From the IMG/VR virus record IMGVR_UViG_3300017971_000001, positions 181,277-245,276 of that record: 64,000 nucleotides of DNA; one strand, 5' to 3'. The notes under the pieces are model-generated. The model saw nothing but the letters and a program-made list of their open reading frames with translations, searched no databases and had not been told where the DNA came from. Shown here piece by piece: positions 30,100 to 53,117 of the stretch (its first letter is position 1; every line of letters begins with the position of its first letter). The position numbers and the translations under genes are program-made.

Positions 30100-30930
30100 G
30101 TGAGGAGTTCCGTCATGTCGTATTTGCAAATGTCCGGCCTCTTCGACAACGCCGACTGGGCCAAGGCCGCCGGTAGCACGACCGACGTTTTCGGCTTGCG
30201 CGCCAAGGAGGCCCGCAAGGCTGCCGAGGAGCAGCAAGAGCACGAGCGCATGCTGCAGGCTCAGACTTTTGAGCAGCGGCGTCTTGTGAGTCAGGACGAG
30301 CGAGAGGCCGCCGCGGTCGATCGCATGCGGGACCGGGTCCGTCTCAAGGTCCAGGAGATCGAGCAGGTCGCACTCTCTGCTGCCCAGGCAATGGAGAAGG
30401 CCCGGAAGTTGATCGAGCTCCCCCAGCTGGCTGGCGACCCAGTCCTCGAGGAAGTGGAGAGCGAGATCGGCTCGCTCGAAGTGGCTGTTGTCCAGATCCA
30501 GGCCGGGACCGTGGTTGACACGGCGACGTTCGACACCAAGCGCCTCGCCGTTGCCTACAGCGACGCCCAGGCGGGCCTGATTGCCATGCGCTCGATTCTC
30601 TCCAGGGCTCTGGGCGTCGTCGAAAAGTTGGAAGGGCGCCTGAACGAGCTCAAGGCAGAGCGCCGTCGCCTGCAGGAGCTCGAGCGTCAGCGGCAAGCCC
30701 AGCTGGCCCAGGAGAAGGCGCGCCAGCGGGCGGCTGAAGCAGCGGCGCGCGAGCGCGAGCAGAAGGCTCGGCAAGAGGCTGAGCGCCAGGCGCGTCTTGA
30801 GAGGATTCAGGCGATCCGTCGCCTGGACGATCAAATCGCCCGCGAGCGCGCTGCGATCCGTCGCCTCAAGACGGAAGTCGTGGAGATTCGTGCGCGGGCT
30901 GCGGAGCGCGCTGCCCTGGCAAGGAGTTAG
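30100..30930 (+). CDS. Coiled-coil putative virion protein
   Basis: N-terminal MSGLFD; long E/R/Q/A heptads. Confidence 0.78.
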   Translation: MRSSVMSYLQMSGLFDNADWAKAAGSTTDVFGLRAKEARKAAEEQQEHERMLQAQTFEQRRLVSQDEREAAAVDRMRDRVRLKVQEIEQVALSAAQAMEKARKLIELPQLAGDPVLEEVESEIGSLEVAVVQIQAGTVVDTATFDTKRLAVAYSDAQAGLIAMRSILSRALGVVEKLEGRLNELKAERRRLQELERQRQAQLAQEKARQRAAEAAAREREQKARQEAERQARLERIQAIRRLDDQIARERAAIRRLKTEVVEIRARAAERAALARS

Positions 30931-30932
30931 TT

Positions 30933-31340
30933 ATGGCGAAGGACGACGTCAACGATCCGGGCCAGAAGTTCCTGCGCGACTTCTTGAGCCAACTCATGGC
31001 GCTGCAGCGAACGAATCAAGAGCTCGTCCAGGTCATGCTGAAGACGTATCAGCAGCAGCAGCAGATCCTGACCCAGCAGGCGAGCCTCACCCAGCAGATC
31101 GGGAATATGACGGCTCACCTGGACGGCCTGAGCCAGCGCGCGGACTACCTCTACGAGCGCATGGGCGAGCTCGGCTCGATCTTGATCGACGAGCAGCAGC
31201 CCCAGAGCCAGACGTATTACCCGACCCAGCCGACGCACTACGCTCCGAACCCGATCGAGCAGATCGGCGGCGCTGTCGCGAACACGCTTTTCGGTGCCGG
31301 GGCGACGCAGCGACGCAGTGGCAGGCGCCGGAGGCGCTGA
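30933..31340 (+). CDS. Gln-rich coiled-coil protein with Arg tail
   Basis: GGAG RBS; ends GRRRRR. Confidence 0.72.
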   Translation: MAKDDVNDPGQKFLRDFLSQLMALQRTNQELVQVMLKTYQQQQQILTQQASLTQQIGNMTAHLDGLSQRADYLYERMGELGSILIDEQQPQSQTYYPTQPTHYAPNPIEQIGGAVANTLFGAGATQRRSGRRRRR

Positions 31341-31399
31341 TAGGCTGAAAGCAAGTCTCGACTTGCGCACTTTTTAGTGCAAAGCCTGCGGAGCCTTTT

Positions 31400-32176
31400 G
31401 TGCTGCTGCCAATCCGTCAAATCAACGTGACGCCCGAGGGGATTCCGATCCTCGCCGGCAGCGCCTCGCCTGAGACAAAGCGTCCCCCGGCTGCGATCCG
31501 CCGAATCCGTTCCGCGGTCCCAGCCAACCCTACTATTGCGCCCATGCGCCCGACGCCCCCGATCGTGTCCATGCACGGCGCAGGCGCTCCCTACGGAAAA
31601 ACGTGGGGCCCTCCTGTCAAATACGTGCGGATCCCTGGCGGAGAGCAAGGGACCGTTGCCACGCTCAAGGTCATGAAGCAGGTCGTGCTCGGGCCCTGGG
31701 GGCACAGGAACCCCGAGGTCGTCGAACTCGCGCGTATGATCACGGACGGAGCCAGCCCCGGACCTGAGAAGAACTACCGCGAAATGGCGGGCCGGATCCT
31801 CGAGTTCATGAAGACGCACGTCGACTACCGACTCGACCCGTCCGGCCTCGAGTACGTTCCGACGCCTTGGTACACCTTGCTCGTCTCGGGCAAGGAAGAC
31901 TGCGACGGCCACAGCGTTGCGACAGCCGCCCTGGCCATGGCGCTGGGCATGAAGGCCGCCTTCCGTACCGTCAAGGGCGACCCGAATCGAAAAGATCAGT
32001 GGAGCCACGTTTACCCCGTAATCGGGTTCGTCGAACGCGGCAAGACTGTCTGGCTGACTGCGGACAGCACGCAGGCAGAAAGCTACCTGGGGTGGGATCC
32101 CCCGCAAGAAAAGCTCTTCGGAATGAAGACGTGGGTGATCACGCCCAGTATGGAGGACCGAGAATGGGAGGCCTGA
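31400..32176 (+). CDS. Transglutaminase-like cysteine protease (candidate maturation protease)
   Basis: GKEDCDGHS (Cys), WSHVYP (His), WLTADST (Asp) in transglutaminase-like order. Confidence 0.82.
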   Translation: MLLPIRQINVTPEGIPILAGSASPETKRPPAAIRRIRSAVPANPTIAPMRPTPPIVSMHGAGAPYGKTWGPPVKYVRIPGGEQGTVATLKVMKQVVLGPWGHRNPEVVELARMITDGASPGPEKNYREMAGRILEFMKTHVDYRLDPSGLEYVPTPWYTLLVSGKEDCDGHSVATAALAMALGMKAAFRTVKGDPNRKDQWSHVYPVIGFVERGKTVWLTADSTQAESYLGWDPPQEKLFGMKTWVITPSMEDREWEA

Positions 32177-34080
32177 TTTTGGGTGGGCGCGGAAGTCGCC
32201 CCCCGCGGAAGCCGGCGCGCGTTCGTCGCGCTGGACTGGGCGGCCTCGGAGCCGGCCCCTGGGACAACTTCAACGCCGCTCAGTTCACCGAGCGCTGCAA
32301 TCCTGGACTCAAGAGTCAGGCGGGCGGCAACGCTCAGCAGATCATGGCCGCGTTCAGCGCTGCAGACGCTGCTCTGACCCGAGCCGAGCGCGACCTCACG
32401 CTCGCCAGCGATCGCCTCTCGACGGTCGGCTTCGATCCCGTCGCTGACTTCGAGGCGGCGCAGCTGGAAGACGACCTCGGCTTCGCGATCGATCAGGTCA
32501 GCGATCTTCGCCGTGACCTGGGCGCGACGTTCGACGACTTCAGCAACAGCATGCGTTCTGCGTTTGACAGCAACTTCTGCCCGCTCGTCCCTGGCGCCGG
32601 GATCGCGCAGGCGGACCAGTTCCTGCCCGCGATCAAGCGAATCCAGGCCGCGGCCTCCGCTTTGACGGGTGACCTCAAGGCGCGCGTCGCTTCGACGGAG
32701 CGCGCGATCGTCGCTCGAATCGATCGCGAGAACCGCGAGCGTGCCGCGGCTGAGGCGGCCCAGCTTGCTGCTGAGCAACGGGCAATCCGCGAGGCTGAGG
32801 AGGCCCGCCGGCTTGCCGAGCTCGAGGCCGAGCGTGAGCGCCTGCGCCTGGAGGCGGAGGAGCGCGAGCGTCAGCGCGAGTACGATCTTCAGCAACAGGC
32901 CCTCGAAGAGCAGCGACTTCGCGAGCAGCGCGAGGCCGAGGCGATCGCGCGTGAAGAGCAGTATCGGCGCGAGGTCGAGGAGCGGAGGCTTGAGGCCGAG
33001 GAGCGTGCTCGGCAAATGGAGCTCGACCGAATCCGCATGGCGGAGGAGGCCGAGGAGCGCCGGCGTCAGCTGGAACTCGAGGCCGAGCAGCGCCGCGAGG
33101 CCATGGAGCAGGAGCGCATTCTCCGAGAGGAGCAGCGTCGACTGCGCGCTGAGGAGCGCGAGGCCGAGCTCGAGCGCCTGACGCTCATGCAGGAACTCGC
33201 CGCCAGCGGACTCCCCCTTCCCGTTGCCACTCCGGCGACCGGGCCGGCGACGTCGTTCGCCTACCCCGGCGCGGCCGCGGCGCAGCTTCCCGCTTCGATC
33301 TATGGCCAGCAGCTTCCTGCTGGTTTCACCACTCCGCCCGGGTTCCAGTCCCCGGCGCTCTCCCCTGGCGCCCCGCAGATCACGGCGTATCCCGGTGCGC
33401 CCGGCGCCGCTCCGGTTCAGCAGCAGATTCAGCCGTTCCAGCAGAGCGCTCCGCTGCCGTTTCAGCAGAGCGCCCCGCTGCAGCCTGCGCCCACGGCCCC
33501 GCCGCCGGCGCCTGGGTTCCAGTGGGCGTCGTTCGATCCGGCAGGCGAGCTCTTCGGTATGGGGCCGATCGCCACTTCGGCCAAGCTGCGCGGAGGCATG
33601 ATCGAGGAGGGCTTCAAGGTCTACGGACCGAATGCTCAGGGCGACTACACCTTCTTCAACCCCGACGGCCAGCGGATCTCCGTCAAGACCATGGCGGGCC
33701 GGACGACCAACCTCGTCACTGAGGACGAGGTCATGGCCGGTCCGATCATGCACGAAGTGGACGGTCAGCAGCGCGTGATCTACAGCCCGCCCGCCGAGGG
33801 TGGCTCGAGCGACGATAGCGCTGCGATCGCTTCGGCGATCGCCCAGATCGTTTCGGCGGGCGCTCAGGCGACCGGGAACGTGCTGGTCGCGCGTGAGCAG
33901 CGCAAGGCCGCGGAAAGGTCTTCCGACGGGTTCCAGATTCCTGGCTACCCCTCGCTCACGATCCGTCAGGAGGGCCCGCAGGGCCTGAACCCCCTGGTCG
34001 TCATTGGCGGCCTGGCGGTCGCTGCCTTGGGAACGTTCGCGGTGATCAAGGTCGCCACGCGCGGCAAGGACGAGGAGTAG
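32164..34080 (+). CDS. Large coiled-coil, tail-anchored virion protein
   Basis: ATG 32164 after GGAGG; RRAGLGGLG; long coiled coil; Pro/Gln linker; C-terminal TM helix then RGK. Confidence 0.82.
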   Translation: MGGLILGGRGSRPPRKPARVRRAGLGGLGAGPWDNFNAAQFTERCNPGLKSQAGGNAQQIMAAFSAADAALTRAERDLTLASDRLSTVGFDPVADFEAAQLEDDLGFAIDQVSDLRRDLGATFDDFSNSMRSAFDSNFCPLVPGAGIAQADQFLPAIKRIQAAASALTGDLKARVASTERAIVARIDRENRERAAAEAAQLAAEQRAIREAEEARRLAELEAERERLRLEAEERERQREYDLQQQALEEQRLREQREAEAIAREEQYRREVEERRLEAEERARQMELDRIRMAEEAEERRRQLELEAEQRREAMEQERILREEQRRLRAEEREAELERLTLMQELAASGLPLPVATPATGPATSFAYPGAAAAQLPASIYGQQLPAGFTTPPGFQSPALSPGAPQITAYPGAPGAAPVQQQIQPFQQSAPLPFQQSAPLQPAPTAPPPAPGFQWASFDPAGELFGMGPIATSAKLRGGMIEEGFKVYGPNAQGDYTFFNPDGQRISVKTMAGRTTNLVTEDEVMAGPIMHEVDGQQRVIYSPPAEGGSSDDSAAIASAIAQIVSAGAQATGNVLVAREQRKAAERSSDGFQIPGYPSLTIRQEGPQGLNPLVVIGGLAVAALGTFAVIKVATRGKDEE

Positions 34081-34084
34081 CGAC

Positions 34085-34411
34085 GTGTCCGGGTTGACCT
34101 TGGGGCTCGGTGACGATCTGGACGACGTGCGCGCCCAGGTCGCTGCTCAGCAGGCTGAGAAGGCTGCTGAGGAGAAGGCTCGTCAAGAAGCGAGTCGGCC
34201 CCAGGTCACCCAGGTCACCAACGAGACCTACCACATTCGCCCCTACCAGTGGGTCCCTCGGCTGACTCAGCGGCGCAGTCTGCTGAACGAACCTGAGGCG
34301 CCCGCGCCCCTTCAACTGCCCGGCATTGTTCGCGAGGGGACCAATTGGCCCCTCGTGATCGGTGGCTCGCTGGCTGCAATCGCATTCATTGCTCTCGTTC
34401 TGAAGAGATAG
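34085..34411 (+). CDS. Tail-anchored membrane protein
   Basis: MSGLTLGLGD; C-terminal LVIGGSLAAIAFIALVLKR. Confidence 0.75.
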   Translation: MSGLTLGLGDDLDDVRAQVAAQQAEKAAEEKARQEASRPQVTQVTNETYHIRPYQWVPRLTQRRSLLNEPEAPAPLQLPGIVREGTNWPLVIGGSLAAIAFIALVLKR

Positions 34412-34412
34412 C

Positions 34413-34634
34413 GTGGACTCTGCAACGAACAATCCGCTGCTCTTCGGCGCAGGCGCTGCAGCGCTGACCTACGGTCTCCGCTCGGCGTCCTCGGACAAGG
34501 ACCGTGAACGTCTTCCGACGCCACTCGCGGCGTTCATTGGCATGACGGCCCTGGTCGCGTTGCTTCAAGGGCTCGGGTCATTCTTGAGCGGAATGCGCGC
34601 GATCGATCAGCCTTCCCTCCCCTTTCCTCGTTAG
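34413..34634 (+). CDS. Small two-TM membrane protein
   Basis: LLFGAGAAALTYGL and FIGMTALVALLQGLG. Confidence 0.68.
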   Translation: MDSATNNPLLFGAGAAALTYGLRSASSDKDRERLPTPLAAFIGMTALVALLQGLGSFLSGMRAIDQPSLPFPR

Positions 34635-34642
34635 GAGTTCGC

Positions 34643-34990
34643 GTGGCTTTGCAAATGCACCAACTCCACGGCTTGGGGAATGCGGCGACGGTGATCGCCT
34701 CGGTCGTCGGGCCCGCGGCTCAGGCGGGCGCGGATATCTTCCGCACCACGCAGGAGAAGAAGATCGCCGAGAAGGAGCTCAAGCAGCGGCGCGCTGAGTC
34801 CGCGACCTACGCTGAACTCTCGAGGGAGGCGCTTGAGGCGAGCGAGCGTCAGCAGGTCCTCGCGCAAGCCCTGGCGCTGCGCCAGGCCCAAGCGCGGCGA
34901 GCTCAGACCCAAACCTACATGCCCTACTACCTGGGCCTTGGCGCGCTGGCGTTGCTTGCGGTCGCCGCGGCCGCGGCAGCGAGGAAATAG
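34643..34990 (+). CDS. Tail-anchored membrane protein
   Basis: LHGLG; coiled coil; C-terminal TM then RK. Confidence 0.75.
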   Translation: MALQMHQLHGLGNAATVIASVVGPAAQAGADIFRTTQEKKIAEKELKQRRAESATYAELSREALEASERQQVLAQALALRQAQARRAQTQTYMPYYLGLGALALLAVAAAAAARK

Positions 34991-34992
34991 AT

Positions 34993-35298: not shown

Positions 35299-35302
35299 AG
35301 CT

Positions 35303-35650
35303 ATGCCCGTCAACCCTTCCTGGCTTCAGTCCGTGCGCGAGAAGAACCGCGCCAAGTTCGGCATGGCCGGCATGAGTGGAGGTATGTCCGGGCTCGGAGA
35401 TCACAGCGCGCAGGCGCTGGTTGACGCGCTGAACGCGAGTCGCGACCAGCGCTCGGTGGCGCTCAAGAAGGCGGAGCCTCAGAAGGAATACGAGCAGGGC
35501 TCGGTGGAGTCGATCCTTCAGTCTCTGCCCGAACTCCAGGTTCAGCCGACGCCGGAGATTCCTCGCGGCGTCTTGTATGTGGGCGGAGCGATCGCGGTCG
35601 GCCTGACGCTCTTGATCGGGATCTCGCTGTTCCGAGGAGGTTCAGAATGA
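35303..35650 (+). CDS. Tail-anchored membrane protein
   Basis: GMAGMSGGMSGLGD; C-terminal TM. Confidence 0.75.
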   Translation: MPVNPSWLQSVREKNRAKFGMAGMSGGMSGLGDHSAQALVDALNASRDQRSVALKKAEPQKEYEQGSVESILQSLPELQVQPTPEIPRGVLYVGGAIAVGLTLLIGISLFRGGSE

Positions 35651-35964
35651 TCGGCCTGGGACAGTTCGACGAAGCCGCGCTCATGTCCAAGCAGCGCGAG
35701 CTCCAGAAGTTGCGCGCTGAGCGCGAGGCGCTGGAGGACGAAGTCGACGCGCTCCGAGTTGAGCTCTCGAAGCCGGCGCCTCGCCCGGAACTGGTTCGCC
35801 AGGCCTCTCCGGACGCGGCTCGGATCCCCGTGGTTCAGCAGGAGCGCGTGCCGCAGCAGCGCGGTCCGATCGTGGTCCCGCAGGCCCCTACTTCCCAGTT
35901 CGGCTTGATTGCTGCTGGCGTGGCGGCGCTCGGCGCCTTCCTCTACTTTCGCAGTCGAAAGTAG
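35647..35964 (+). CDS. Tail-anchored membrane protein
   Basis: MIGLGQ; C-terminal GLIAAGVAALGAFLYFRSRK. Confidence 0.75.
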   Translation: MIGLGQFDEAALMSKQRELQKLRAEREALEDEVDALRVELSKPAPRPELVRQASPDAARIPVVQQERVPQQRGPIVVPQAPTSQFGLIAAGVAALGAFLYFRSRK

Positions 35965-36013
35965 TTGGTGGCAGGGCCAGCAGACTTGCCTACGATCGAG
36001 CTAGGGAGTCTGT

Positions 36014-36547: not shown

Positions 36548-37590
36548 GCGGACTCGAACTGGGAATGGGCGACTACATGCAGGTCGGCCCGGCGGCTCGC
36601 TTCGTGGGGCCGAACGCCGCTCAGGTGATCATGCGCGGGCCGCACGGAATGCGTCTCGCTGCTGACCCGGTCAAGACCCGCGAGGGTCGCGTACGCGGGT
36701 CCGGCTTCCGCTTCTGGGCCGAGCAGGAGCTTCCCTTCCTGGAGAAGCACCAGTCCTGGAACCCCGGGGCTCGGGTCGTGGGGCTCATGGGGCTCTCTGG
36801 GTTGGGCCTGATCAAGGGGCCCGGCTATCGCTACACCGACAGCAACGACTGGAAGAAAAAGACCAATGAGGCGATCGGCCTCCTCGCCCGTCTCACCTAC
36901 GAGCCGAATTCCGGACGCGTGCCCATTTCTAGCGCCGTTCTCAGCGGCCTGAATGTCCAGATCTCAGCAATCGACAGGGTCCTCAAAAAGGACGAGTCGA
37001 ACACTCGGATCTCGGAGGCGGAGATCGGTCAAGCAGACCGGGCGCGCCAAAACGCGATCAACATTCTCAACAAGTATCGAAGCGATACCCGCAGCTTCAC
37101 TGGCCCGGTCAGCGACTCGATCAATGCTGTGATCGGTCATTTCAACAACGTCGCCAACTACCTCCTTGACGTTCAACACGCGCGGCGATACGACCGCAAG
37201 GACGAGTTCTCCGATCTCCGGGCTCAAGCCGCCATGCGAGACCGGGAGCAGAGTTCTCAACCGCAGGTCGATCGCGACACTCGCGAGACCAGTCTCGACA
37301 GCATTCGCGCTCAAGTTGCCATGCGGGAGGCCGAGCGCAAGGGGTCGAGCTCGAGCTCTACGAACCGAAGCCAGCCCGCCAAGGCGACCGATCCCTGGTG
37401 GCGCTCGAGCGCCAAGGAAAAGGCGCGCGAAGGAGGCCGCACGACGCTCGGCACCGACGAGCTCAAGATCTCACTCAACACGGGCGGGTCGGGTAGCGGC
37501 CTCAGCACGCCGGTCATGGTCGGCGTCGCGGTCGTCGGCACGCTCGGCGCCCTGGCGGCGCTCAAGGTCCTGATCGGAGTTCGTTCGTGA
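36544..37590 (+). CDS. Tail-anchored membrane protein
   Basis: LGMGDY and LSGLG; C-terminal TM. Confidence 0.78.
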   Translation: MSGLELGMGDYMQVGPAARFVGPNAAQVIMRGPHGMRLAADPVKTREGRVRGSGFRFWAEQELPFLEKHQSWNPGARVVGLMGLSGLGLIKGPGYRYTDSNDWKKKTNEAIGLLARLTYEPNSGRVPISSAVLSGLNVQISAIDRVLKKDESNTRISEAEIGQADRARQNAINILNKYRSDTRSFTGPVSDSINAVIGHFNNVANYLLDVQHARRYDRKDEFSDLRAQAAMRDREQSSQPQVDRDTRETSLDSIRAQVAMREAERKGSSSSSTNRSQPAKATDPWWRSSAKEKAREGGRTTLGTDELKISLNTGGSGSGLSTPVMVGVAVVGTLGALAALKVLIGVRS

Positions 37591-38076: not shown

Positions 38077-38904
38077 ATGCCTCCACCGATCATTCCTTTC
38101 CAACCTCAGGGCGCTGGCTGGGGTCCCCGGACTCCGCAGCACTCTCTCTACCCCAGCTTTACCCCCAACTGGAGCCCTGCTCCGGAGATCCCTGGCACGA
38201 CGGAGCCCGGCGGGGGAATGGTCTCGTTTACGTCACAAGGAGTAGCCGGTATGAACGGCATGGGCGACATGTTCACCTACCCCCAGGGCACCAACCCGCA
38301 GGAGTTCTACGCGAACTCGATCCCCAAGTCCCCGATTCCGATTCCGCAGCAACAGGCTCCCTTCGAACCTCCGCACGCGGCGCGGGTCACCGAAGGAGCC
38401 ATGGCCTGGGAAATGTCCACGGCTCCCTTCGACCTGGCCCCTCCCGCTCCTGCGCTCGCCCCTTCGGCGGCACCCGCCAAGATCGCCGAGGTTCACGCCA
38501 TGGGCCGGGCCGCGAGTGAGGCCAAGGCGCTCGAGGCCGCCCAGGCCGCCAAGGTCGCTGCCGACAACGCGGTGCGCGCGGCCCGGGTCGGAGCACCTCA
38601 GGTCGCCAACACCAACGCCGCGACGGCTGAGGCCGCGGCCAACGTGGCTGCCGCCTCTGCCAAGACCCCCCAGGGCCAGAAGCTCGCCGCTACGGCTCAG
38701 GGTCATGCGACGAAGGCCAAGGCCGCGGCTCGGATCGCTGCCAACGGCGGGAGCAACGGCATGAGCGATTTCCTGGAGCTCAGCGGCATGCACGGCATGG
38801 GTGCCGGCATGAACTGGATCCAGAGCAACAAGTGGTGGCTCCTCGGCGCCGGCGCTGTGGCCCTCGGTCTCTACATGACCAAGGGCAAGTATTGGGGCAA
38901 GTAA
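38077..38904 (+). CDS. Pro/Ala-rich tail-anchored protein
   Basis: MNGMGD, GMSDFLELSGMHGMG; C-terminal WWLLGAGAVALGLYM. Confidence 0.78.
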   Translation: MPPPIIPFQPQGAGWGPRTPQHSLYPSFTPNWSPAPEIPGTTEPGGGMVSFTSQGVAGMNGMGDMFTYPQGTNPQEFYANSIPKSPIPIPQQQAPFEPPHAARVTEGAMAWEMSTAPFDLAPPAPALAPSAAPAKIAEVHAMGRAASEAKALEAAQAAKVAADNAVRAARVGAPQVANTNAATAEAAANVAAASAKTPQGQKLAATAQGHATKAKAAARIAANGGSNGMSDFLELSGMHGMGAGMNWIQSNKWWLLGAGAVALGLYMTKGKYWGK

Positions 38905-39533: not shown

Positions 39534-41039
39534 ATGCTCAGCTTCAACGAGCTCCAGGGCTTTGCCCAGGCCCACTCTGGTGACTACCGGTTCGGGCTTG
39601 ACGGCCGGAAGAAGGCGTGCTGCAGCAGCTGCGCGCACAACGGTCCGTGTGAAGGCGACAGCCACCAGCACGGGCTCGGGCGTCCGATCGATATCAACGA
39701 CTGGAAGAAGTGGATTCGTCACGAAGAAGCCGACACCATGCCGCCTGGGTTCCCTCCCCCCGCCCGTAGCTTCAGCCCGGCCTTCTCGGGACTCCGTGGC
39801 GCTACGGTCCTTACAGGCGAAGGGGATATGGACGATCCTCTGGACGCGCCACCGCTCGGGTACAAGTACGTCCAGACCACCAAGCCAAACACGACGGTCA
39901 TGGCGAAGCCCATGGGCGTTGTTCCGAAGCAGAGGCGGCGCGACGTCACGCGCATGATCGAGGAGCTCGAGTTCCTCGCGGCGACCCCCGGCGTCCACCC
40001 TCGCGCCCTCGCTTCCAAGATCTGGCAGGCGCGCAAGGCGCTCATGGAGAGCCAGGACTGGAGCTACGCCAGCTACAGCAATCCGCGCATGCGCTACGAC
40101 AGCAAGCGCGATCTGGAGGCGCGCCTTGCCTCGGTCGAGCGAGTCCTGGGTGTGGGCGACGTCAGCCCCAAGACCTTCGCGTTCTTCTACGGCATGGGCG
40201 GTCTGGGCAGGTGGCAGGGCCAGCAGGATCCGATCAAGAAGCTCGCGCAGTGCATTCAGGGGGCGATCTGCTTCCCGAAGGGCTACTGCTGCCCGTCTGG
40301 GACGCACTTCGACGAGCCCTACTACGACGACCCGCTCTACTTCGATCAGGGCTATCCCGAATACCCTGAGTACGGATACCCGGAGACCGGCGATCCTCGC
40401 CTTCCGCCGCCCATGGGCGACCCGCGTCAACCCCCTCCCTTCTTCGAGGAGACGTGGGGCGAGCCGCGTCGTCCGGGTGAGACCTATATCCCCGGACCCA
40501 AGTTGACCGAGCGCGGCCCCGTTACCTCGATCCCGGGCGCTCCGATCACGAGCATTCCTGGCGGATCGATCGGACCCGCCGGCGCCATTTCCACCGGCGG
40601 TGGAAAGATCGGACCTGCGAACGCTGGCCTGATCGCTGCGGGCGGGGTCGCTTCCGGTGCCGCGGCATCCATGCCCAACTCGGGCGCCGGTCCTGGCTCG
40701 ATCCTTCCTGGCGGAACGAAGACTTCGACTTCGACGGGCGGATCGCTTTCGGTGGACGAGGCGGTCAAGGCAGTCTCCATGCCGAATCAAAAGAAGTCCG
40801 TTCAGCTGCTCAAGCCAGGCACGGGAATCCTTTCGCGCCCGTATGTCGGCGCGCCCGAGCTCGTGCAGACGGGCCCTTCGGCTCAGGACTTTCAAGAAGC
40901 AGAGCGTCAGCGCCGCGCCGCTCGTCCCGGTTGGGGCGGAGGCGACGGCGGCGGAAGCATGGTCTCCCTGGGAGGCCTCTCTGCCCTGCAGCACAGCATG
41001 AACGCGGCCCGCATTGCGGCTCGCCGCCGGCGGAGGTGA
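39534..41039 (+). CDS. Cys/Pro/Gly-rich putative virion protein
   Basis: ATG 39534; CCSSCAHNGPC, MGGLG, CIQGAICFPKGYCC; Arg tail. Confidence 0.75.
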   Translation: MLSFNELQGFAQAHSGDYRFGLDGRKKACCSSCAHNGPCEGDSHQHGLGRPIDINDWKKWIRHEEADTMPPGFPPPARSFSPAFSGLRGATVLTGEGDMDDPLDAPPLGYKYVQTTKPNTTVMAKPMGVVPKQRRRDVTRMIEELEFLAATPGVHPRALASKIWQARKALMESQDWSYASYSNPRMRYDSKRDLEARLASVERVLGVGDVSPKTFAFFYGMGGLGRWQGQQDPIKKLAQCIQGAICFPKGYCCPSGTHFDEPYYDDPLYFDQGYPEYPEYGYPETGDPRLPPPMGDPRQPPPFFEETWGEPRRPGETYIPGPKLTERGPVTSIPGAPITSIPGGSIGPAGAISTGGGKIGPANAGLIAAGGVASGAAASMPNSGAGPGSILPGGTKTSTSTGGSLSVDEAVKAVSMPNQKKSVQLLKPGTGILSRPYVGAPELVQTGPSAQDFQEAERQRRAARPGWGGGDGGGSMVSLGGLSALQHSMNAARIAARRRRR

Positions 41040-42079: not shown

Positions 42080-42142
42080 TGGATCGGGTCGTCCGCCGAG
42101 CAGTTCGCTACTTGCTCCTAGAGAGCCTTGAGGGGTAAAACA

Positions 42143-44775: not shown

Positions 44776-44787
44776 GCGAGGTGCGCT

Positions 44788-47495: not shown

Positions 47496-47532
47496 AAGGT
47501 CTCCTTCTAAAGTCGTGCCATTAAACGGCTTG

Positions 47533-47563
47533 AACAGCCGGCCCGGTAACGGGCCGGCTGTTT
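47533..47563. terminator. Perfect inverted repeat, likely bidirectional terminator
   Basis: AACAGCCGGCCCG-GTAA-CGGGCCGGCTGTT. Confidence 0.85.
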
Positions 47564-47570
47564 CCATTTT

Positions 47571-49205
47571 ATGAAAGGTCTTCTTCTTCGAGTGACGATA
47601 GGCTCGATCCCTAGAAGGAGGCTCTGCATGAAGTGGAGAGGTCAGACTTTTGAGGGTGAGTCTTTCTACCTTCTTGGCTTGATAGCTGCGGACGGATACG
47701 TGGCGAAAGAAGGGGGAAGCAACCAAAGCAAGGTGTCGATCAACTGCGGCAATTCCGCCGGAGATCAAAAGTTCGCAAAGTATGTCGCCCGCTTGATTGA
47801 TTCAACGTGGGGGCAGAGATTCGGATTTTCATGCACGCTTCGCCATGTGGATCGGAGGCCGCCTCGCGTTCCTTACTGGGAGCCCCATTGCTGCTCCAGG
47901 TCCTTGGCAGGCGCCATTAGGAAATTTTGCGAAGGTCGAATCGGAACGTATTCCTGGCGAATCCCGCCCGCCCTCTTGAGGAGTCCTGGGCCTGAGCTTT
48001 TGTCTTGGATCCAGGGCTTCGCGGACGGAGACGGGACCGTATCCGTCAAGCCGCCCAAGAGGGAGGTGAGAATTTCAAGTGTGAACCGAGAGGGGATTGA
48101 AGATATCAGGCGCGCCCTGTCTCACTTTTCAATCAGCGCGAAAGTTTACGAGCACGATCGCGAGATCGAAAACTGGGAGCCCTCTATAAACATAGTCATT
48201 TGCGACCGCCGCTCGCTTGAGATCTACGCTCAGAAAATCGGATTCCGCCAACCCGACAAGAAGCGCAAGCTCGCCGAGGCGCTTGCGTCCTACAAGCGCG
48301 ATCATGCCAACCTACTTCGACATGAGGTCGAAGATCTGCTGCCCGAAGTGATCCGCAGGCGAGCATGCGGCGAGTCCTTCGCTGAGATCCAGGAGGCGCT
48401 CGAGCTCGCAACCGTCGAAGTTCCTAAGGGCATGCTCAAGCGCGCCGTTCGCTCTGCCAGGGGCAAGTGTGTCGTCTGCCTCAAGTCCCCTGCCACGCAC
48501 TCGATCCCCCGCGTGGTCCGAGGGCGGAGCGGCAAGTATGCCTGCGATCCGTGCCTGATCGAGCTCGAGCCCAAGGAGGAATGGGGCGAGGAGTTCGTCC
48601 AGCTGAAACTTCGAGAGGTTGCAGATTTCCTCGACGAGAACCATTACCTCGGGCGCCGCTCGAGCCGGAACGCGTTCGCGCTGCGGAACAAGCACGGCGT
48701 GCTCGTATTCTCCCGCAAGCCTCAGGCGAGCTCGCTCCCCCGTGACTGGCTCGAGCTCTCGCGCTGGTGCATTGTCTCGGACGACATGAACGCGGGGACG
48801 AAGCAGTGGTCTCGCGCCAAAGCTTGGCTTCGCGAGAACACCGAAGCGACGACCGTCGTCACCTACTCCGATCCGTCCCGGCACGACGGATCGCTGTATC
48901 GAGCGGCAGGGTTCCTTTGGGCTCCTTCTTCTCAGTTCCTGCTCAAGAACTTGTCGCTCACTGGGGAGCGTCACCCGGGCAAGCCTTACGTGGACAAGAA
49001 CCGCTGGGTCTACCCGCTTCGACCCGACGCCCGGCGCGCCGAGGCGCTGACGGTCCGTCACCCTTGGCTTTACAACAGCGACGAGCTCAAGTTCCTCTGC
49101 GACTGGCCGGAGCCGAAGTGGCGCGGTCGCGGCACTCGCTTCTCCGGCGGCGGCAAGGACTACCAGCGCTGGAAGGAGCTTCTCCAGGAGCGATCGAACT
49201 CCTAG
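47571..49205 (+). CDS. LAGLIDADG endonuclease-like domain fused to a Mom-like (GNAT-fold) DNA-modification domain
   Basis: YLLGLIAADG and WIQGFADGDG; CVVC..CDPC; FLDENHYL..LELSRWC..VVTYSDP..HDGSLYRAAGF; start may be ATG 47628. Confidence 0.72.
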   Translation: MKGLLLRVTIGSIPRRRLCMKWRGQTFEGESFYLLGLIAADGYVAKEGGSNQSKVSINCGNSAGDQKFAKYVARLIDSTWGQRFGFSCTLRHVDRRPPRVPYWEPHCCSRSLAGAIRKFCEGRIGTYSWRIPPALLRSPGPELLSWIQGFADGDGTVSVKPPKREVRISSVNREGIEDIRRALSHFSISAKVYEHDREIENWEPSINIVICDRRSLEIYAQKIGFRQPDKKRKLAEALASYKRDHANLLRHEVEDLLPEVIRRRACGESFAEIQEALELATVEVPKGMLKRAVRSARGKCVVCLKSPATHSIPRVVRGRSGKYACDPCLIELEPKEEWGEEFVQLKLREVADFLDENHYLGRRSSRNAFALRNKHGVLVFSRKPQASSLPRDWLELSRWCIVSDDMNAGTKQWSRAKAWLRENTEATTVVTYSDPSRHDGSLYRAAGFLWAPSSQFLLKNLSLTGERHPGKPYVDKNRWVYPLRPDARRAEALTVRHPWLYNSDELKFLCDWPEPKWRGRGTRFSGGGKDYQRWKELLQERSNS

Positions 49206-49383
49206 CAAACGCTCCCAACAAAGCAAACGCGCACTTGGAACTCGGTGGCAGGGCCAGGCAGGTCGTTTAGCCTCGAGATAGAGAACGTCTGCACCCGCAG
49301 GCAGACCGACAACTTCTCTTCTCTGGCGGGGCTCGTCGGTCCGCGGCGGGCCGGCGAGCGCCGCCGATTCCAAGGAGCACTCC

Positions 49384-50826
49384 ATGCCCGCTCACACGTC
49401 CACGGTCAGCCAGGGCTGGGGAGCCACGCACACCTGCGCCTACTGCCATGGCTTCGGCAGCATTCCGCCCCTGATTCGCGGCAGCGACGGGCGAATGCAT
49501 ATCAATCCCGACTACGAAATGGTGAAGCGGTTCCACCTCGCCGCTGAGCCGTTCGGGGAGACGCTCGGACCTGGCGAGTCGCGCACGTTCACGTTCACGG
49601 TTCCCGCCGAGGAGGAAGGTCTGGGCGACCTGCTGGTCAACGAGTTCTTCGCGCTCTACGAGCCCGAGGGGATCCGCAACGTCTTCGTCGACTTCCTCAA
49701 CCTGCAGACCGATCGCCTGTTCCAGAACGCGCCCGTCCCCACGACGCTGATCATGGGCAACGCGCACCTCAACACCTGCCTGCCCTGCTGTTTCCTGATC
49801 CAGGCGACCAACAGCCTGCAGGTTCGCGTGCGCAACGAAGAGTCGACCGACATTCAGGTTCGTCTCGTCGCCCGCGGCAAGCGCTTCCTGACTCGCGACC
49901 ACGAACTCCGCGCGCGCATGCTCCAGTACTGGAACATGCTCCCCAGCTACAGCTACTTCCTCACACTCGACGAAGAGGAGGTTGTGGTCCCTGCCGGAGA
50001 GACCGTCAGCGCGACCATGAAGGTTCCTGGCCACGGAGACTTCGAAGTCAAGTGGCCGCGCTGTGAAGTGCTGAACGCGGCGACGGGCGCGCAGGAGAAC
50101 GCCAACGGCATTCTGGTCACCGTCGCCGAAGGGATCGGTCGTCAGTGGCAGAGTGATCCGCTCCCGCTCGGCGCGTTCGTCGCGACACCGACGCTCGACG
50201 TGGCCGGGTTCCCGGGCGGGATCTACCGCGCTGCCAGCGCTGGCCACTGCCCCAGCTACACCCAGCTGTTCAAGCGAAACACGTTCGTCCGTCACACGTT
50301 CGAGAACACGAGCGGCACCGACCTGATCGTTCGTCTGACCTACGCTGGCTGCTTCCACCAGGTCGACGAGTGCCCGCCCGGACGCTCGATCGATCGGATC
50401 CGCAGTCTCGAGCCGACGATCGGTCCCATGCTGATCCCGCAGGGCGACTACTGCGCCCCGCAGCAGCAGTACTACCCCGAGGAGCCCTTCTACAACGAAG
50501 AGCCGATCTATCAGTCCCCTCAGGCTTCGGGCGGAATGCAGCCGCCTGCTCAGCAGCCGGGCGGGAGCGCGATCTTCACGACGGTCCCTGGCGGAGCGGG
50601 CTCGGTCCAGGCTGGCGGCCCCAGTAGCTACGTCCCCAAGTACTACGAGGCCGGCGGCGGCGGCATGGCCGTCCCTAAGGCTGAGATCGCCAAGGCGCAC
50701 GGCCTCAAGCCCGGCCAGGTTTACGCTCCCGGCTTCCGCGGAATGCAGGGCATGGGCGCTGGCCCTGTGATCCGCCGCGGGCCCTACGTCTGGGATCCGA
50801 TCGCTCGGACCTGGAAGCGAGGCTAG
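49384..50826 (+). CDS. Double jelly-roll-like capsid protein, paralog 1
   Basis: Two similar beta-rich halves each ending ..L..(R/A)G(K/C)(R/F); NAPVP..IMGN..LP..LQVRVRN; C-terminal MQGMG. Confidence 0.7.
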   Translation: MPAHTSTVSQGWGATHTCAYCHGFGSIPPLIRGSDGRMHINPDYEMVKRFHLAAEPFGETLGPGESRTFTFTVPAEEEGLGDLLVNEFFALYEPEGIRNVFVDFLNLQTDRLFQNAPVPTTLIMGNAHLNTCLPCCFLIQATNSLQVRVRNEESTDIQVRLVARGKRFLTRDHELRARMLQYWNMLPSYSYFLTLDEEEVVVPAGETVSATMKVPGHGDFEVKWPRCEVLNAATGAQENANGILVTVAEGIGRQWQSDPLPLGAFVATPTLDVAGFPGGIYRAASAGHCPSYTQLFKRNTFVRHTFENTSGTDLIVRLTYAGCFHQVDECPPGRSIDRIRSLEPTIGPMLIPQGDYCAPQQQYYPEEPFYNEEPIYQSPQASGGMQPPAQQPGGSAIFTTVPGGAGSVQAGGPSSYVPKYYEAGGGGMAVPKAEIAKAHGLKPGQVYAPGFRGMQGMGAGPVIRRGPYVWDPIARTWKRG

Positions 50827-50829
50827 TCC

Positions 50830-52326
50830 ATGACGTTTCCAGTCGAACCGCCGGTGATCCTCGAGTACGGCATGGGGGACTGCCGGACGTTCATGAACAT
50901 TCCGCCCCTCGTCCATTGGGACGACGGGTCGACGTGTATCAACCCTGACTTCGACGCGGTGACCAAGTTCCACCTCGCCGCCAAGGGGATCGAGTTCGCG
51001 GACCGGAGTCTCGTGACTAACGTCACGATCAACCCCGGCGAGACGGTCGACTTTCAGCTGACCGTCGAGCGTGAGGAGAACGGCCTCGGGCACCTTCTGA
51101 TCAACGAGCTCCTGATTCTGACGAACCCTGAGGGCGCGACAGACCTGACGGTTCAGATCAAGTCGATCCAGGGCGACAGCACCTACATGAACGGGCCGAC
51201 GCCGATCACGCACGTGTTCGGCAACGCGCACCTCAACTGCTGCCTGCCCTGCCCGATCATGCTGTATCCGAATCAGACCTTGATCCTCAAGGTGACCAAC
51301 AATGAGGCCTTCTCGGTCTCGACTCGGATCACGGCCCGCGGCAAGCGGTTCATGCCCTACCACAACATGAGCCTGATCTCCGAGCTCGAGCGCTGCTGGT
51401 CCATGAACCCGAGCTCGCCCTACTTCGCGAGCTTCGACCAGGGCCCGATCACGGTTCCTGCCAATGGAACCGCGCAGGGGCAGATTACGATCCCCGGGGG
51501 CGGCTGGTTCCAGATCGAGTACATCCGCAGCACGCTCGGCTCAAGCGACTTGATCGTTGACGTGACCGAGGGTCGGATCGGCAAGCGCTACATGAACCGC
51601 CCGGTCCGACTGGGCCTCTATGCCACCGAGGACCTGCAGATCACTGGATTCCCGGGCAACCTGTACCGCGCAGCCTCGGCCTGCCACTGCCCGCCGGTCC
51701 AGCAGTTGGTTCGCGGAAACATTCGCATGATCCACGACTTCACCAACCCGACCGGCGCTCCGATCACGGTGAACCTCACCTATGTCGGCTGCTTCCACAA
51801 GGGGGTTGATATCTGCCCGCCGCAGAAGGACCTCGACCGCGTTCGCCGGCACCAGCACATGATCGACTGCTGCGGAGGCGAGCTCTTCCTGGACCTCGCA
51901 GACGAGGAGCCGTGCCCGCCCGCCTCTGTGCCCGCGTTCACTTCGGAGTATCTGAAGTTTGCGGAGGACGGCGAGACCCCCTTCCCACGTCCGCTTGAGC
52001 AGAACATGCCTGCGCCTGAGCCCGTGCCTCAGGTCAAGCAACTGTGGCAACCGGGGGACCACGGCGCGCCGATCTCGCCCATGCAGCTTCCGCCCGATCA
52101 GGCGTACGCGATCAACCATGCTGGCCGCCTCGCGGTCGTGCAGATCGATTCGCAGCGCCGCCCGATTCGCTACGTGCGTCCGGAAGAGCTCCCTATGGGC
52201 ATGGACGCCTCCTACTCCATGTATCGTGCCAACTTTGGGGATCAGGACCCTGAGTTCCGCAAGTGGCTCGCCTCCCAGGGGGGTGGGGTCAGCGGACTGG
52301 GTCAAGGTGAATGGGAGGCACTCTAG
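50830..52326 (+). CDS. Double jelly-roll-like capsid protein, paralog 2
   Basis: Colinear with 49384 (INPD..KFHLAA, GNAHLN.CLPC, RGKRF, Y.GCFH); C-terminal VSGLG. Confidence 0.7.
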   Translation: MTFPVEPPVILEYGMGDCRTFMNIPPLVHWDDGSTCINPDFDAVTKFHLAAKGIEFADRSLVTNVTINPGETVDFQLTVEREENGLGHLLINELLILTNPEGATDLTVQIKSIQGDSTYMNGPTPITHVFGNAHLNCCLPCPIMLYPNQTLILKVTNNEAFSVSTRITARGKRFMPYHNMSLISELERCWSMNPSSPYFASFDQGPITVPANGTAQGQITIPGGGWFQIEYIRSTLGSSDLIVDVTEGRIGKRYMNRPVRLGLYATEDLQITGFPGNLYRAASACHCPPVQQLVRGNIRMIHDFTNPTGAPITVNLTYVGCFHKGVDICPPQKDLDRVRRHQHMIDCCGGELFLDLADEEPCPPASVPAFTSEYLKFAEDGETPFPRPLEQNMPAPEPVPQVKQLWQPGDHGAPISPMQLPPDQAYAINHAGRLAVVQIDSQRRPIRYVRPEELPMGMDASYSMYRANFGDQDPEFRKWLASQGGGVSGLGQGEWEAL

Positions 52327-53117
52327 TGGCCAGCAACATGCCCGGTTCGGGCGACCCTTTCTCGCGTGCCTACGCGGGCAAGGGCGGAGGCGGGGCTCGC
52401 AAGAAGTCCACCCCAAAGAAGAAGCCTGCTAAGAAGTCGGGCATGGGCAGCATGAACGACCCTTACGCGGGATACGTTCCTGGCATGGAGACGTGCCCGC
52501 CCCTGCCGACCCAGGCGCTTGAGGAGTGCCTGCGGTCCGCGGTCGATCTGCTGGAAGACACGCTCCAGATTTCGGATCTCGCGCCGTGGATCCACCCGCC
52601 CTACCGCTCGGCCTACTACTGCAAGGACGTGCGCGCCGTGGTCAGCACGACAGCTGGCGTCAACGCGGTGACGAACGCCTCCGGGATCGCGCTCGCGGCC
52701 GCGAACTCGACCTTTGTGGCGCTCACTCCGCTCGAAATGGAGAGCGCGGCCAAGCCGGTCACGATCTTCACGCTCAAGACGCCGACGAGCTCGGCGATCC
52801 GCGTCGCTTCCTGGGGAATCGCCAACCTGACAGGTCCGCCCGAGCAGGTCGAGATCCGGGTCAAGGCGGCCACGACCTACGGAACTCCCGGCCCGCCGAA
52901 TCCTGGGATCAGCGGGGCGCAGGTCAGCGACCACCAGCCGACCTTCTTCCTCATGCAGGGAGGTCAGGACCTAGAAGTTCAAGTGCGACTGCGCGACGTG
53001 ACCCAGGGCCCAGCGCTCCTCCGGTTCGGGATCTGCTACTGGGAGTATCCGATCTCCAAGCGCACGGACTCTCGCGACAAGACGCGCCTGCGCAGCGGCT
53101 ACGGAACGGGGTGCTAA
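52326..53117 (+). CDS. Penton/vertex-like jelly-roll protein
   Basis: Beta-strand pattern TIFTLKTP..IRVASWG..QPTFFL..LEVQV..ICYWEYP; follows the capsid genes. Confidence 0.5.
   Translation: MASNMPGSGDPFSRAYAGKGGGGARKKSTPKKKPAKKSGMGSMNDPYAGYVPGMETCPPLPTQALEECLRSAVDLLEDTLQISDLAPWIHPPYRSAYYCKDVRAVVSTTAGVNAVTNASGIALAAANSTFVALTPLEMESAAKPVTIFTLKTPTSSAIRVASWGIANLTGPPEQVEIRVKAATTYGTPGPPNPGISGAQVSDHQPTFFLMQGGQDLEVQVRLRDVTQGPALLRFGICYWEYPISKRTDSRDKTRLRSGYGTGC

Follow-up and report, generated by a model that had tools for sequence, protein, structure and literature searches.

A shared Gly-Leu/Met-Gly signal in the putative virion proteins of a large prokaryotic virus with predicted jelly-roll capsid proteins

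The putative virion-protein gene block

The stretch of DNA analysed here (the window) is the last 64 kb of a 245 kb viral contig, the remaining 181 kb of which was not inspected. Its translation signals are prokaryotic. A plus-strand block of putative morphogenesis genes begins with a gene for a scaffold-like protein and continues through a transglutaminase-like enzyme, a series of small membrane proteins, very basic core-like proteins and two paralogous capsid-like proteins (Table 1). Most proteins of this block carry a short peptide signal, hydrophobic-x-Gly-Leu/Met-Gly, and we compared its occurrence with that in five related metagenomic loci, referred to as Rel1, Rel2, L015, L007 and L025, and in more distant loci (L026, L018 and L021). 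The DNA of a further relative, an 89.8 kb contig, was not examined. The setting is a putatively new clade of 94-245 kb prokaryotic viruses, with two double-jelly-roll paralogs, at least eight tail-anchored membrane proteins and histone-like core proteins.

Table 1. Features of the window that bear on the Gly-Leu/Met-Gly signal.
Position	Strand	Feature	Motif sites	Observations
21319..21333	-	Site in ORF 20836-21402	LLGMG	Only strict match in the upstream divergent gene set; some minus-strand neighbours in Rel1 and Rel2 also carry the motif
27309..30008	+	899-aa scaffold-like protein (role inferred); acidic N-terminus, RGG/YGG low-complexity stretch, long charged coiled-coil-like region; first gene of the block	None	No Pfam or PHROG hit; syntenic 824-aa and 749-aa ORF in relatives
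30100..30930	+	Coiled-coil-like protein; likely true start Met6 (MSYLQMSGLF...)	Near-match MSGLF 30130-30144	Rel1 ortholog starts MSYLEL
31400..32176	+	Transglutaminase-like (papain-fold) cysteine enzyme, candidate maturation protease; disordered N-terminal extension (aa 1-63), catalytic domain (aa ~70-258) with Cys168, His203, Asp222		See text
31571..31585	+	Border between the enzyme's disordered extension and its fold	Weak motif MHGAG	In 18 of 44 homologs the extension carries a strict G[LM]G
32164..34080	+	638-aa tail-anchored protein (TM 607-632)	LGGLG 32236-32250 (aa 25-29); LFGMG 33550-33564 (aa 463-467)	(E)(L/M)FGMG site conserved in Rel1, Rel2, L015 and L007
34085..38072	+	Nine small ORFs, seven with a single C-terminal TM helix (34085, 34643, 35303, 35647, 36014, 36544, 37587)	N-proximal: TLGLG 34097-34111, LHGLG 34664-34678, MSGLG 35384-35398, MIGLG 35647-35661, ELGMG 36556-36570, LSGLG 36793-36807; LQGLG 34563-34577 (in 34413)	Orthologous N-termini in relatives carry the motif; LQGLG lies in or next to a TM segment and is a doubtful signal
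38077..38904	+	275-aa protein	MNGMG 38251-38265; MHGMG 38788-38802	Second site in the context SDFLELSGMHGMG, just before a C-terminal hydrophobic anchor
39534..41039	+	501-aa protein, N-terminus MLSFNELQGF	Mid-protein tandem FYGMGGLG 40185-40208	Tandem site conserved in Rel1 and L015
41048..46641	+	Four very basic (K+R 20-24%) core-like proteins	In the C-terminal tail of the last (44788-46641): EEGMG 46354-46368, LSGMG 46468-46482, ISGMG 46555-46569	GMGD(F/Y/W) tail site conserved in Rel2 and even in the distant L026; degenerate GM(N/S)DW at the same position in Rel1 and L025
46818..47495	+	Highly conserved ~215-aa protein, possibly a minor capsid or vertex protein (function not tested)	None	Near-identical N-termini in Rel1, Rel2 and L025
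49384..50826	+	Double-jelly-roll capsid-like protein 1	MQGMG 50743-50757, in a disordered linker 27 residues from the C-terminus	Tail motif present in ~27 of 51 homologs
50830..52326	+	Paralogous capsid-like protein 2	EYGMG 50863-50877 (N-arm); VSGLG 52288-52302 (10 residues from the C-terminus, followed by GEWEAL)	Both sites conserved in Rel1 and L025
52311..53117	+	268-aa protein	KSGMG 52434-52448, in a basic N-terminal arm	L025 ortholog has EGLGG at the same place

In order to place this virus, we searched 50,697 phage records, and found no nucleotide or protein match. Pfam and PHROG searches with the capsid-like, membrane, core and scaffold-like proteins, and with ten distant capsid relatives, likewise returned nothing. 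A model of capsid-like protein 1 predicted with AF2 (pLDDT 78.7) contains two beta-sandwiches in one chain (aa 30-168 and 188-326), with aa 449-461 below pLDDT 50. Foldseek matched it to the capsid proteins of SGIV, STIV, PBCV-1, PR772 and Wip1 with a probability of ~1 but with low TM-scores (0.26-0.41), as well as to DUF2961. The capsid proteins are double-jelly-roll-like, as in Bamfordvirae-like viruses. No FtsK/A32-type packaging ATPase was found by Pfam among the window ORFs scanned, though with most of the contig outside the window this absence speaks neither for nor against such an assignment.

Enrichment and conservation of the motif

A preliminary description of this sequence had listed twelve strict matches to (M/L/I)xG(L/M)G in the block and one in minus-strand ORF 20836, and had read them as an adenovirus-like maturation code next to a transglutaminase-like protease at 31400. 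The observation itself is confirmed: every strict match listed is present in the ORF named, the near matches (EYGMG and VSGLG in 50830, TLGLG in 34085, KSGMG in 52311 and MSGLF in 30100) are also real, and two further strict sites had been missed, LFGMG in 32164 and LWGLG in 39229. In total, [MLI]xG[LM]G occurs 14 times in the 26 ORFs of 30100-53117 against 0.98 expected from composition (Poisson p 3e-12), while the 51 ORFs outside the block have 2 sites against 1.5 expected.

The preliminary description had conceded that its reading would fail if the motif were no commoner than a Gly-rich background predicts. We therefore shuffled the proteins of the block in two ways, and in neither case did any of 1000 shuffles reach 14 sites, whether whole proteins were shuffled (mean 0.92, maximum 5) or residues were shuffled within 20-residue blocks, which keeps the local Gly/Met richness (mean 1.58, maximum 6). 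A Gly-rich compositional artefact is thus rejected. Gly and Leu codons vary between sites, so that this is a protein-level motif and not a DNA repeat. The excess over expectation, which had also been proposed as a test in related genomes, recurs in Rel1 (13 against 1.14), Rel2 (9 against 0.63), L015 (12 against 0.42), L007 (4 against 0.28) and L025 (5 against 0.51), although the distant loci L018 and L021, which have a related enzyme domain, show no enrichment. Sites often lie at orthologous positions inside otherwise divergent tails that cannot be aligned, including MQGMG in the C-terminal tail of a capsid protein that is only 34% identical, though some orthologs have degenerate or missing sites (L007, Rel1). 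These results indicate a selected short linear motif that is specific to the morphogenesis block and conserved in relatives.

The core G[LM]G occurs 28 times in the block against 6.8 expected, and among GxG tripeptides only those with L or M in the middle, and runs of G, are clearly enriched. The core is usually preceded two residues earlier by L or M, and often further upstream by an aromatic-x-(E/Q)-L element, and is followed by D, A, S or G. The preliminary description had placed the sites near termini and outside folded domains. The terminal bias holds, as 40 of 73 sites across three genomes lie in the first 35 or last 60 residues, but about 7 of the 28 core sites are unlikely to be accessible signals, since they sit in transmembrane segments (34413, 34643 aa 98, 37587, 39229 and 44788 aa 407) or in the conserved jelly-roll core (49384 aa 79 and 50830 aa 85). 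A flank-only scoring matrix trained on relatives scored the window sites above random positions (p 4e-6); as orthology confounds this result, it gives only weak support. Lipobox, signal-peptide, sortase or rhombosortase sorting signals and N-myristoylation were also considered from the sequences, and were set aside because there is no Cys, no N-terminal hydrophobic core and no consistent spacing between motif and TM segment, and because the translation signals are prokaryotic.

The motif is narrower than the adenovirus code. The (M/I/L)XGX-G form occurs 25 times against 9.2 expected, but nearly all of the excess comes from sites with L or M as the fourth residue (14 of 25), and with other non-Gly residues there are 10, about as expected, so that the count does not settle whether the adenoviral form as such is enriched. 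The second form, (M/I/L)XGG-X, is not enriched, with 10 against 9.2 expected in the block, 13 against 11.4 in Rel1 and 3 against 5.6 in Rel2.

The transglutaminase-like enzyme

The product of ORF 31400 belongs to the transglutaminase-like (papain-fold) superfamily. It matches Pfam PF01841 at E 2.7e-4 (21.6 bits, just under the 23-bit cut-off), and all 29 aligned homologs match this family (best E 2.1e-9), with one of the 29 also matching PF04473. The Cys168-His203-Asp222 triad, in that order, is invariant in 29 sequences. A profile of the enzyme gave no significant hit against PDB sequences, but Foldseek searches with an AF2 model (pLDDT 78.9) gave a probability of 1.0 to 3isr, the bacterial transglutaminase 4xz7, LapG (4u65/4fgq), PNGase and Rad4, and 0.87-0.99 to the phage pseudomurein isopeptidases PeiP and PeiW, with TM-scores of only 0.3-0.55. 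There was no match to a BTLCP-type family, so that the similarity to LapG is structural only. As the preliminary description had stated, the enzyme is not adenain: no C5 or Ulp1 Pfam hit was obtained, the order of the triad differs from the His-Glu/Asp-Cys of clan CE, and the fold matches are to the transglutaminase/papain class. It is the only peptidase-like domain that Pfam finds among the roughly 67 window ORFs scanned, although the uninspected part of the contig could encode another protease. The enzyme is 55-74% identical across the closer relatives, falling to about 36% in the most distant aligned, which is similar to the capsid protein, and it lies between the scaffold-like genes and the membrane-protein genes in every relative.

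Possible roles of the signal

The virus is inferred to have a double-jelly-roll capsid, an internal membrane and basic core proteins, and the signal lies in flexible N- or C-terminal arms or in inter-domain linkers of most of its putative virion proteins. The leading but unproven reading, which we hold only tentatively, is that the signal is the recognition and cleavage site of the co-encoded enzyme. The enzyme would be built into the assembling particle, would possibly trim its own N-terminal extension, and would cut leaders, tails and linkers of membrane, core and capsid proteins during maturation; the signal may also serve as an incorporation tag before it is cut. The motif, its enrichment, its conservation, the fold and triad of the enzyme and the synteny are established by the analysis, while it is by inference that the enzyme is a peptidase, that it acts on these sites, and that the cut falls at a given bond, as proteolysis was not assayed and sequence alone gives no evidence of it. 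A cut after the second Gly would place L/M at P2, the usual papain-fold preference, whereas a cut before it would mimic adenoviral IVGL|G. The interpretation in the preliminary description, a proteolytic maturation or assembly signal convergent with or ancestral to that of adenovirus, is therefore only partly supported: the motif is not the adenovirus code as such, and descent of the adenoviral system from this one is contradicted by the different protease fold, which leaves convergence as a possibility.

Several features favour cleavage over a rival in which the motif is a docking or incorporation signal that is not cut, but the rival explains much of the same data and, while less likely, is the more serious of the alternatives. 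In the rival view a short terminal peptide would bind a common receptor, either the inner face of the jelly-roll shell, the scaffold-like 27309 protein or the membrane, recruiting membrane, core and enzyme proteins into the particle and stapling the internal membrane to the capsid, and the enzyme would be just one more cargo, for example a virion-borne cell-wall peptidase used at entry or exit, as the match to PeiP and PeiW could suggest. The terminal bias, the conservation on both sides of the core (GMGD-aromatic-M), the conserved terminal peptides that follow the motif and the multiple tandem copies in several tails, which suggest avidity, suit a binding peptide, and encapsulin targeting peptides are Gly- and Leu/Ile-rich terminal motifs of similar size. 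The presence of the motif in the extension of about 40% of the enzyme's homologs fits either self-trimming or cargo loading. Cleavage is made less certain by the weak MHGAG of the window enzyme, by predicted leaders that would in some cases be only 5-9 residues long, and by a superfamily that also contains transglutaminases, deamidases, glycanases and cell-wall isopeptidases. However, sites sit in low-confidence linkers of the AF2 models, and the conserved mid-protein tandem sites (39534, 32164) recall polyprotein processing and are unusual for cargo tags. The capsid proteins themselves carry the motif at both ends, no receptor has been identified, and the Gly-hydrophobic-Gly form with a P4-like hydrophobic residue is typical of cysteine-protease sites. 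Transglutaminase-fold enzymes that act as site-specific endopeptidases at small-residue motifs exist, LapG being one that is among the top structural matches of the enzyme, and Gly-flanked sites cut by virion cysteine proteases are the rule in adenovirus.

Two further explanations seem very unlikely. The enzyme could be a true transglutaminase that cross-links virion proteins, with the motif marking the flexible segments that hold the reactive residues; its superfamily, its intact triad and the match to 4xz7 allow this, and Gln is sometimes next to the motif (GLGQ, MQGMG), but no Gln or Lys is consistently placed in or near it, and the preferred following residues are D, A, G and S. Alternatively, the motif could be a passive glycine hinge or a by-product of Gly/Met-rich low-complexity tails, such as those of L025 and Rel2, with no specific partner. 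About a quarter of the core sites lie in TM helices or in the jelly-roll core, but the survival of the enrichment in local shuffles, the restriction to L or M between the glycines, the flank preferences and the positional conservation argue against this view.

Among the closest known systems is the adenovirus protease (adenain/AVP), which cuts a virion-wide set of Gly-containing sites in capsid, core and membrane-active precursor proteins of a double-jelly-roll virus; the pVI site IVGL|G falls in the same pentapeptide class, and basic core proteins are among the putative substrates here. The present system differs in its enzyme fold, in the restricted residue between the glycines, in the lack of enrichment of the GG-X form and in its prokaryotic host. 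The core proteases of poxvirus (I7, AG|X) and African swine fever virus (pS273R, GG|X) cut small-residue motifs in core and membrane proteins, including both termini of a membrane protein and polyprotein linkers, in large membrane-containing viruses, but they are Ulp1/adenain-like and their motifs lack the central L/M. LapG, one of the bacterial transglutaminase-like cysteine proteinases (BTLCP), shares the fold class and is a site-specific endopeptidase acting at a di-alanine motif near a protein terminus, but it has a single adhesin substrate, is periplasmic and depends on Ca2+. Double-glycine leaders cut by C39 peptidase domains, and the leaders of lasso-peptide B peptidases, have spaced hydrophobic residues and an E-L element, end in Gly residues and are removed by a papain- or transglutaminase-fold cysteine peptidase, but the spacing differs, sites here are also C-terminal and internal, and no transporter or RiPP context is present. 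In phage T4, short N-terminal capsid-targeting sequences on many head proteins direct incorporation and are then removed by gp21, although gp21 is a herpesvirus-type serine protease that cuts after Glu in an HK97-fold capsid. Encapsulin cargo-loading peptides, of about 10 residues, dock cargo to the inner shell surface, but they are not cleaved, the shell is HK97-fold and the shell protein does not carry the tag.

No maturation protease is known for prokaryotic double-jelly-roll viruses such as the PRD1, PM2, Bam35 and STIV types, and the adenain/Ulp1 protease is regarded as an acquisition of eukaryotic viruses. Our literature searches for large prokaryotic jelly-roll viruses, or for transglutaminase-like capsid maturation proteases, found no description of either, and the clade itself has 238 capsid-protein cluster representatives and no Pfam or PHROG family. 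It is possible, though less likely than not, that this lineage independently evolved an adenovirus/poxvirus-style maturation system in which one virion-packaged transglutaminase-fold cysteine protease processes fifteen or more membrane, core and capsid proteins at G-(L/M)-G sites, which would show that Gly-motif proteolytic maturation of membrane-containing jelly-roll virions arose at least twice, with unrelated enzymes. If the cleavage reading holds, a conserved protease-like enzyme and a conserved, virion-wide signal would be present in a prokaryotic lineage that also has histone-like core proteins and a rich membrane proteome, capsid maturation by proteolysis would be a convergent solution for large membrane-containing jelly-roll virions, and a defined substrate code would be supplied for an uncharacterised branch of the transglutaminase-like superfamily. 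Even if the signal turns out to be a docking tag, it would be the first general virion-incorporation signal described for this virus realm.

Gene content and organization of the region

The 64-kb window is the last part of a 245,276-bp IMG/VR contig (IMGVR_UViG_3300017971_000001 = Ga0180438_10000045) and has a G+C content of 60-68%. We curated a set of 77 ORFs, guided by GC3, and the gene calls used throughout are our own. Shine-Dalgarno-like GGAG/GAGG sites lie 6-15 nt upstream of 44 of the 77 starts, and GTG/TTG starts and overlapping stop-start junctions are common, so the host is prokaryotic. Neither the capsid-like protein nor the 23-kb gene block described here matches a collection of 50,697 phage records. 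At 245 kb, with relatives on contigs of 94-190 kb, the contig is far larger than known prokaryotic double-jelly-roll viruses. One relative is binned in a MAG labelled Deltaproteobacteria, which offers a hint as to the host.

The block is on the plus strand and begins with the gene of a scaffold-like 899-aa protein (ORF 27309), in which a FUS-like RGG/YGG low-complexity stretch is followed by a very long, charged, Q/E/R-rich helical region. This protein is syntenic in relatives, carries no copy of the motif under study, and is a scaffold or condensate-forming candidate. It is followed by two further helical proteins, the transglutaminase-like ORF (31400), a 638-aa tail-anchored protein, a run of small proteins of which seven have a single C-terminal transmembrane (TM) helix, several Pro/Gly-rich proteins, four very basic proteins (K+R 20-24%), a highly conserved 225-aa protein, a LAGLIDADG-Mom fusion ORF, two paralogous proteins of 480 and 498 aa (capsid-like proteins 1 and 2), and smaller beta-rich proteins. 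An ORF similar to the LAGLIDADG-Mom fusion, which separates the 225-aa protein from capsid protein 1, is found at the same place in two relatives (Rel2 and L025) but is absent in a third (Rel1), so it is probably a mobile insertion.

The 480-aa protein was modelled from a 32-sequence alignment (pLDDT 78.7), and the model has two beta-sandwiches joined by a helix. Foldseek places it next to the capsid proteins of Singapore grouper iridovirus, STIV, PBCV-1, PR772 and Wip1, and next to the cellular DUF2961 double-jelly-roll family, with probabilities near 1 but low TM-scores. We read the block as the morphogenesis module of a membrane-containing double-jelly-roll virus, although this reading rests on fold, composition and gene order rather than on any named family. 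Pfam and PHROGs searches gave nothing for nearly all of these proteins.

A second short motif, of unknown function, occurs in the four basic core-like proteins. In these, Asn is followed by Pro 31 times against 4.4 expected, so that half of all Asn residues are followed by Pro, and the pair is often preceded by R, K or S (RRNP, RKNP, RSNP). A histone-H1-like protein encoded on the minus strand also carries RSNP, and the orthologs in relatives begin with ...NPWFSPP or ...SNPR. Downstream of the capsid genes lies a Gly/Ser/Ala-rich protein, possibly a fibre or spike, with many G-x-G repeats (GVG, GIG, GLG); its GxG content is compositional and was not counted as part of the signal.

Positions of features in the window
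Position	Strand	Feature
734-1585	+	RNase T-like exonuclease
3109-3528	+	PTH2-type peptidyl-tRNA hydrolase
4338-4412	+	tRNA-Leu(AAG)
18756-19955	-	Multi-HTH / sigma-70 region 4 protein
24488-24991	-	KKRTTKK-repeat, histone-H1-like protein
27309-30008	+	Scaffold-like 899-aa protein, first gene of the block
41048-46641	+	Four very basic core-like proteins
47571-49205	+	LAGLIDADG homing-endonuclease domain fused to a Mom-like DNA-modification domain
50758-50826	+	Conserved peptide beyond the C-terminal motif of capsid protein 1
52303-52326	+	Conserved peptide beyond the C-terminal motif of capsid protein 2
57933-60509	+	858-aa Gly/Ser/Ala-rich protein
61304-62047	+	2OG-Fe(II) oxygenase

Enrichment and conservation of the G(L/M)G motif

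The preliminary description had listed strict matches to a Gly-Leu/Met-Gly motif across the block, and this observation held, as all of the listed matches exist and two more were found. The 26 block ORFs (7,447 aa) hold 14 [MLI]xG[LM]G sites against 0.98 expected from the composition of each protein (p 3e-12), while the other 51 ORFs (12,500 aa) hold 2 against 1.5 expected. A lack of excess over a Gly-rich background had been put forward in advance as an outcome that would count against the motif, and this was not what we found. In 1000 whole-protein shuffles the maximum was 5, and in 1000 shuffles confined to 20-residue blocks, which preserve local Gly/Met richness, the mean was 1.58 and the maximum 6. 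The core G[LM]G occurs 28 times against 6.8 expected. Among all GxG tripeptides only x = L (16 against 5.0), x = M (12 against 1.8) and poly-Gly stand out, with a small excess on low counts for x = W (3 against 0.8), and the same holds in two relatives. Codons for both glycines and for Leu vary freely, so selection acts on the peptide.

Recurrence in related genomes had likewise been proposed as a check. The capsid-like protein and the transglutaminase-like enzyme each returned 51 cluster hits in a set of 5.8 billion proteins, often on the same long contigs, and a profile search of 1.84 billion representatives found 238 capsid relatives. We assembled two syntenic relatives, Rel1 (a 102 kb contig, with about 55% capsid identity) and Rel2 (a 94 kb contig, with 34% capsid identity and 50% enzyme identity), and also used three shorter loci and one MAG contig labelled Deltaproteobacteria (190 kb). 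The excess was seen in the Rel1 and Rel2 blocks and in related loci designated L015, L007 and L025, although these related sequences are not independent samples. Neighbouring non-block genes stay at background, apart from a slight excess in the upstream minus-strand genes of Rel1 (3 against 0.65 expected, p 0.03).

Occurrence of [MLI]xG[LM]G sites in related loci
Locus	Observed	Expected
Rel1 block	13	1.14
Rel2 block	9	0.63
L015	12	0.42
L007	4	0.28
L025 capsid region	5	0.51

Sites are conserved at orthologous positions. These include (E)(L/M)FGMG in the 638-aa protein, in four relatives; the tandem GMGGLG linker of the protein encoded by ORF 39534; YGMGDC in the N-arm of capsid paralog 2 and GLG followed by GEWE(A/T)(L/I) at its C-end; and the SDFLELSGMG and GMGDYM sites in the tail of the basic protein. 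In the capsid family the C-terminal tail is otherwise barely alignable, yet about 27 of 51 homologs keep a strict G[LM]G 10-45 residues from the end, and most of the others have a degenerate form; Rel2 has the identical MQGMG. A distant capsid relative sits on a 27 kb contig (L026), and its basic protein still ends with a GMGDF site.

Across 73 sites in three genomes, the residue two before the first Gly is hydrophobic in 63% (L or M in 44%), the residue three before is often G, E or L, and aromatic residues or Met are enriched five to eight residues before. The residue after the second Gly is D, A, G or S, and the next residue is hydrophobic in half. Typical contexts are N-terminal (MSGLELGMGD, MIGLGQ, MALQMHQLHGLGN; in relatives MSSLRMNQVPLLRGLRGLGE) or tail repeats (SDFLELSGMG...GMGDYMEL). 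Forty of the 73 sites lie in the first 35 or last 60 residues. In the two AF2 models the sites fall in low-confidence segments, namely aa 449-461 (pLDDT below 50) of the capsid protein and the border of the disordered extension of the enzyme. About seven core matches in TM helices or in the jelly-roll core are probably structural coincidences or unrelated.

The transglutaminase-like enzyme

The product of ORF 31400 matches Pfam Transglut_core only weakly, but all 29 aligned homologs match it (best E 2.1e-9), and Cys168 (GDCD), His203 (WSHVY) and Asp222 (ADSTQ) are invariant. The model (pLDDT 78.9) has a disordered 63-residue N-terminal extension and a compact alpha/beta domain. Its best structural neighbours, with TM-scores that are modest here also, are a putative cysteine protease (3isr), a bacterial transglutaminase (4xz7), LapG, PNGase/Rad4, and the phage pseudomurein isopeptidases PeiP and PeiW. 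It is therefore a member of the transglutaminase-like superfamily and is not adenain, in agreement with the preliminary description, which had assigned it to a different family from the adenovirus enzyme. The fold alone does not identify it as a protease; however, LapG shows that this fold can be a site-specific endopeptidase at a small-residue motif (di-alanine; PMC10990149).

The enzyme keeps the same position after the scaffold-like genes in Rel1, Rel2 and an 89.8 kb relative. Eighteen of 44 homologs carry a strict G[LM]G in their own N-terminal extension, while the copy in the window has only MHGAG. Pfam finds no other peptidase domain among the roughly 67 window ORFs scanned, which come from the 64 of 245 kb examined here.

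Possible roles of the motif and its relation to adenovirus maturation

The data establish a selected, block-specific short linear motif, whereas what reads it is a matter of inference. The reading of the motif as a cleavage signal, which the preliminary description had proposed, is favoured by several points. The Gly-hydrophobic-Gly form with an upstream hydrophobic residue is typical of cysteine-protease sites, and the adenoviral pVI site is literally IVGL|G (PMC4246237). There are also conserved mid-protein tandem sites, sites are present on capsid, core, membrane and enzyme proteins alike, and a conserved papain-fold enzyme is embedded in the module. No experiment is available for this uncultured virus. 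If the cut follows the second Gly, L/M would sit at P2, the classic papain-fold preference; this is an inference.

The main rival to this reading is that the motif could be an uncut docking or incorporation tag of the encapsulin cargo-peptide type, which is favoured by conservation on both sides of the core, by conserved terminal peptides beyond the motif, and by tandem copies. On that view the enzyme might be a virion-borne cell-wall peptidase. The two readings are not exclusive, since T4 capsid-targeting sequences are both tag and cleavage site. A role for the enzyme as a cross-linking transglutaminase is unlikely, because no Gln or Lys is fixed near the motif.

The interpretation of the motif as an adenovirus-like maturation code, convergent with or ancestral to that of adenovirus, was only partly supported. 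The resemblance is formal and partial. The type-1 consensus is matched only because L/M is allowed at X, and the type-2 consensus is not enriched. The enzymes are unrelated in fold, and common ancestry of the maturation system is therefore not supported. Convergence is the only version of this idea that survives, and it depends on cleavage being shown. Conserved peptides do lie beyond the C-terminal motifs of both capsid proteins, with capsid protein 1 ending in PGQxY(Y/W)DPxxxxWRR(A/V) and capsid protein 2 in GEWE(A/T)(L/I). If the motif is cut, these would be released as conserved small peptides, which recalls adenoviral pVIc.
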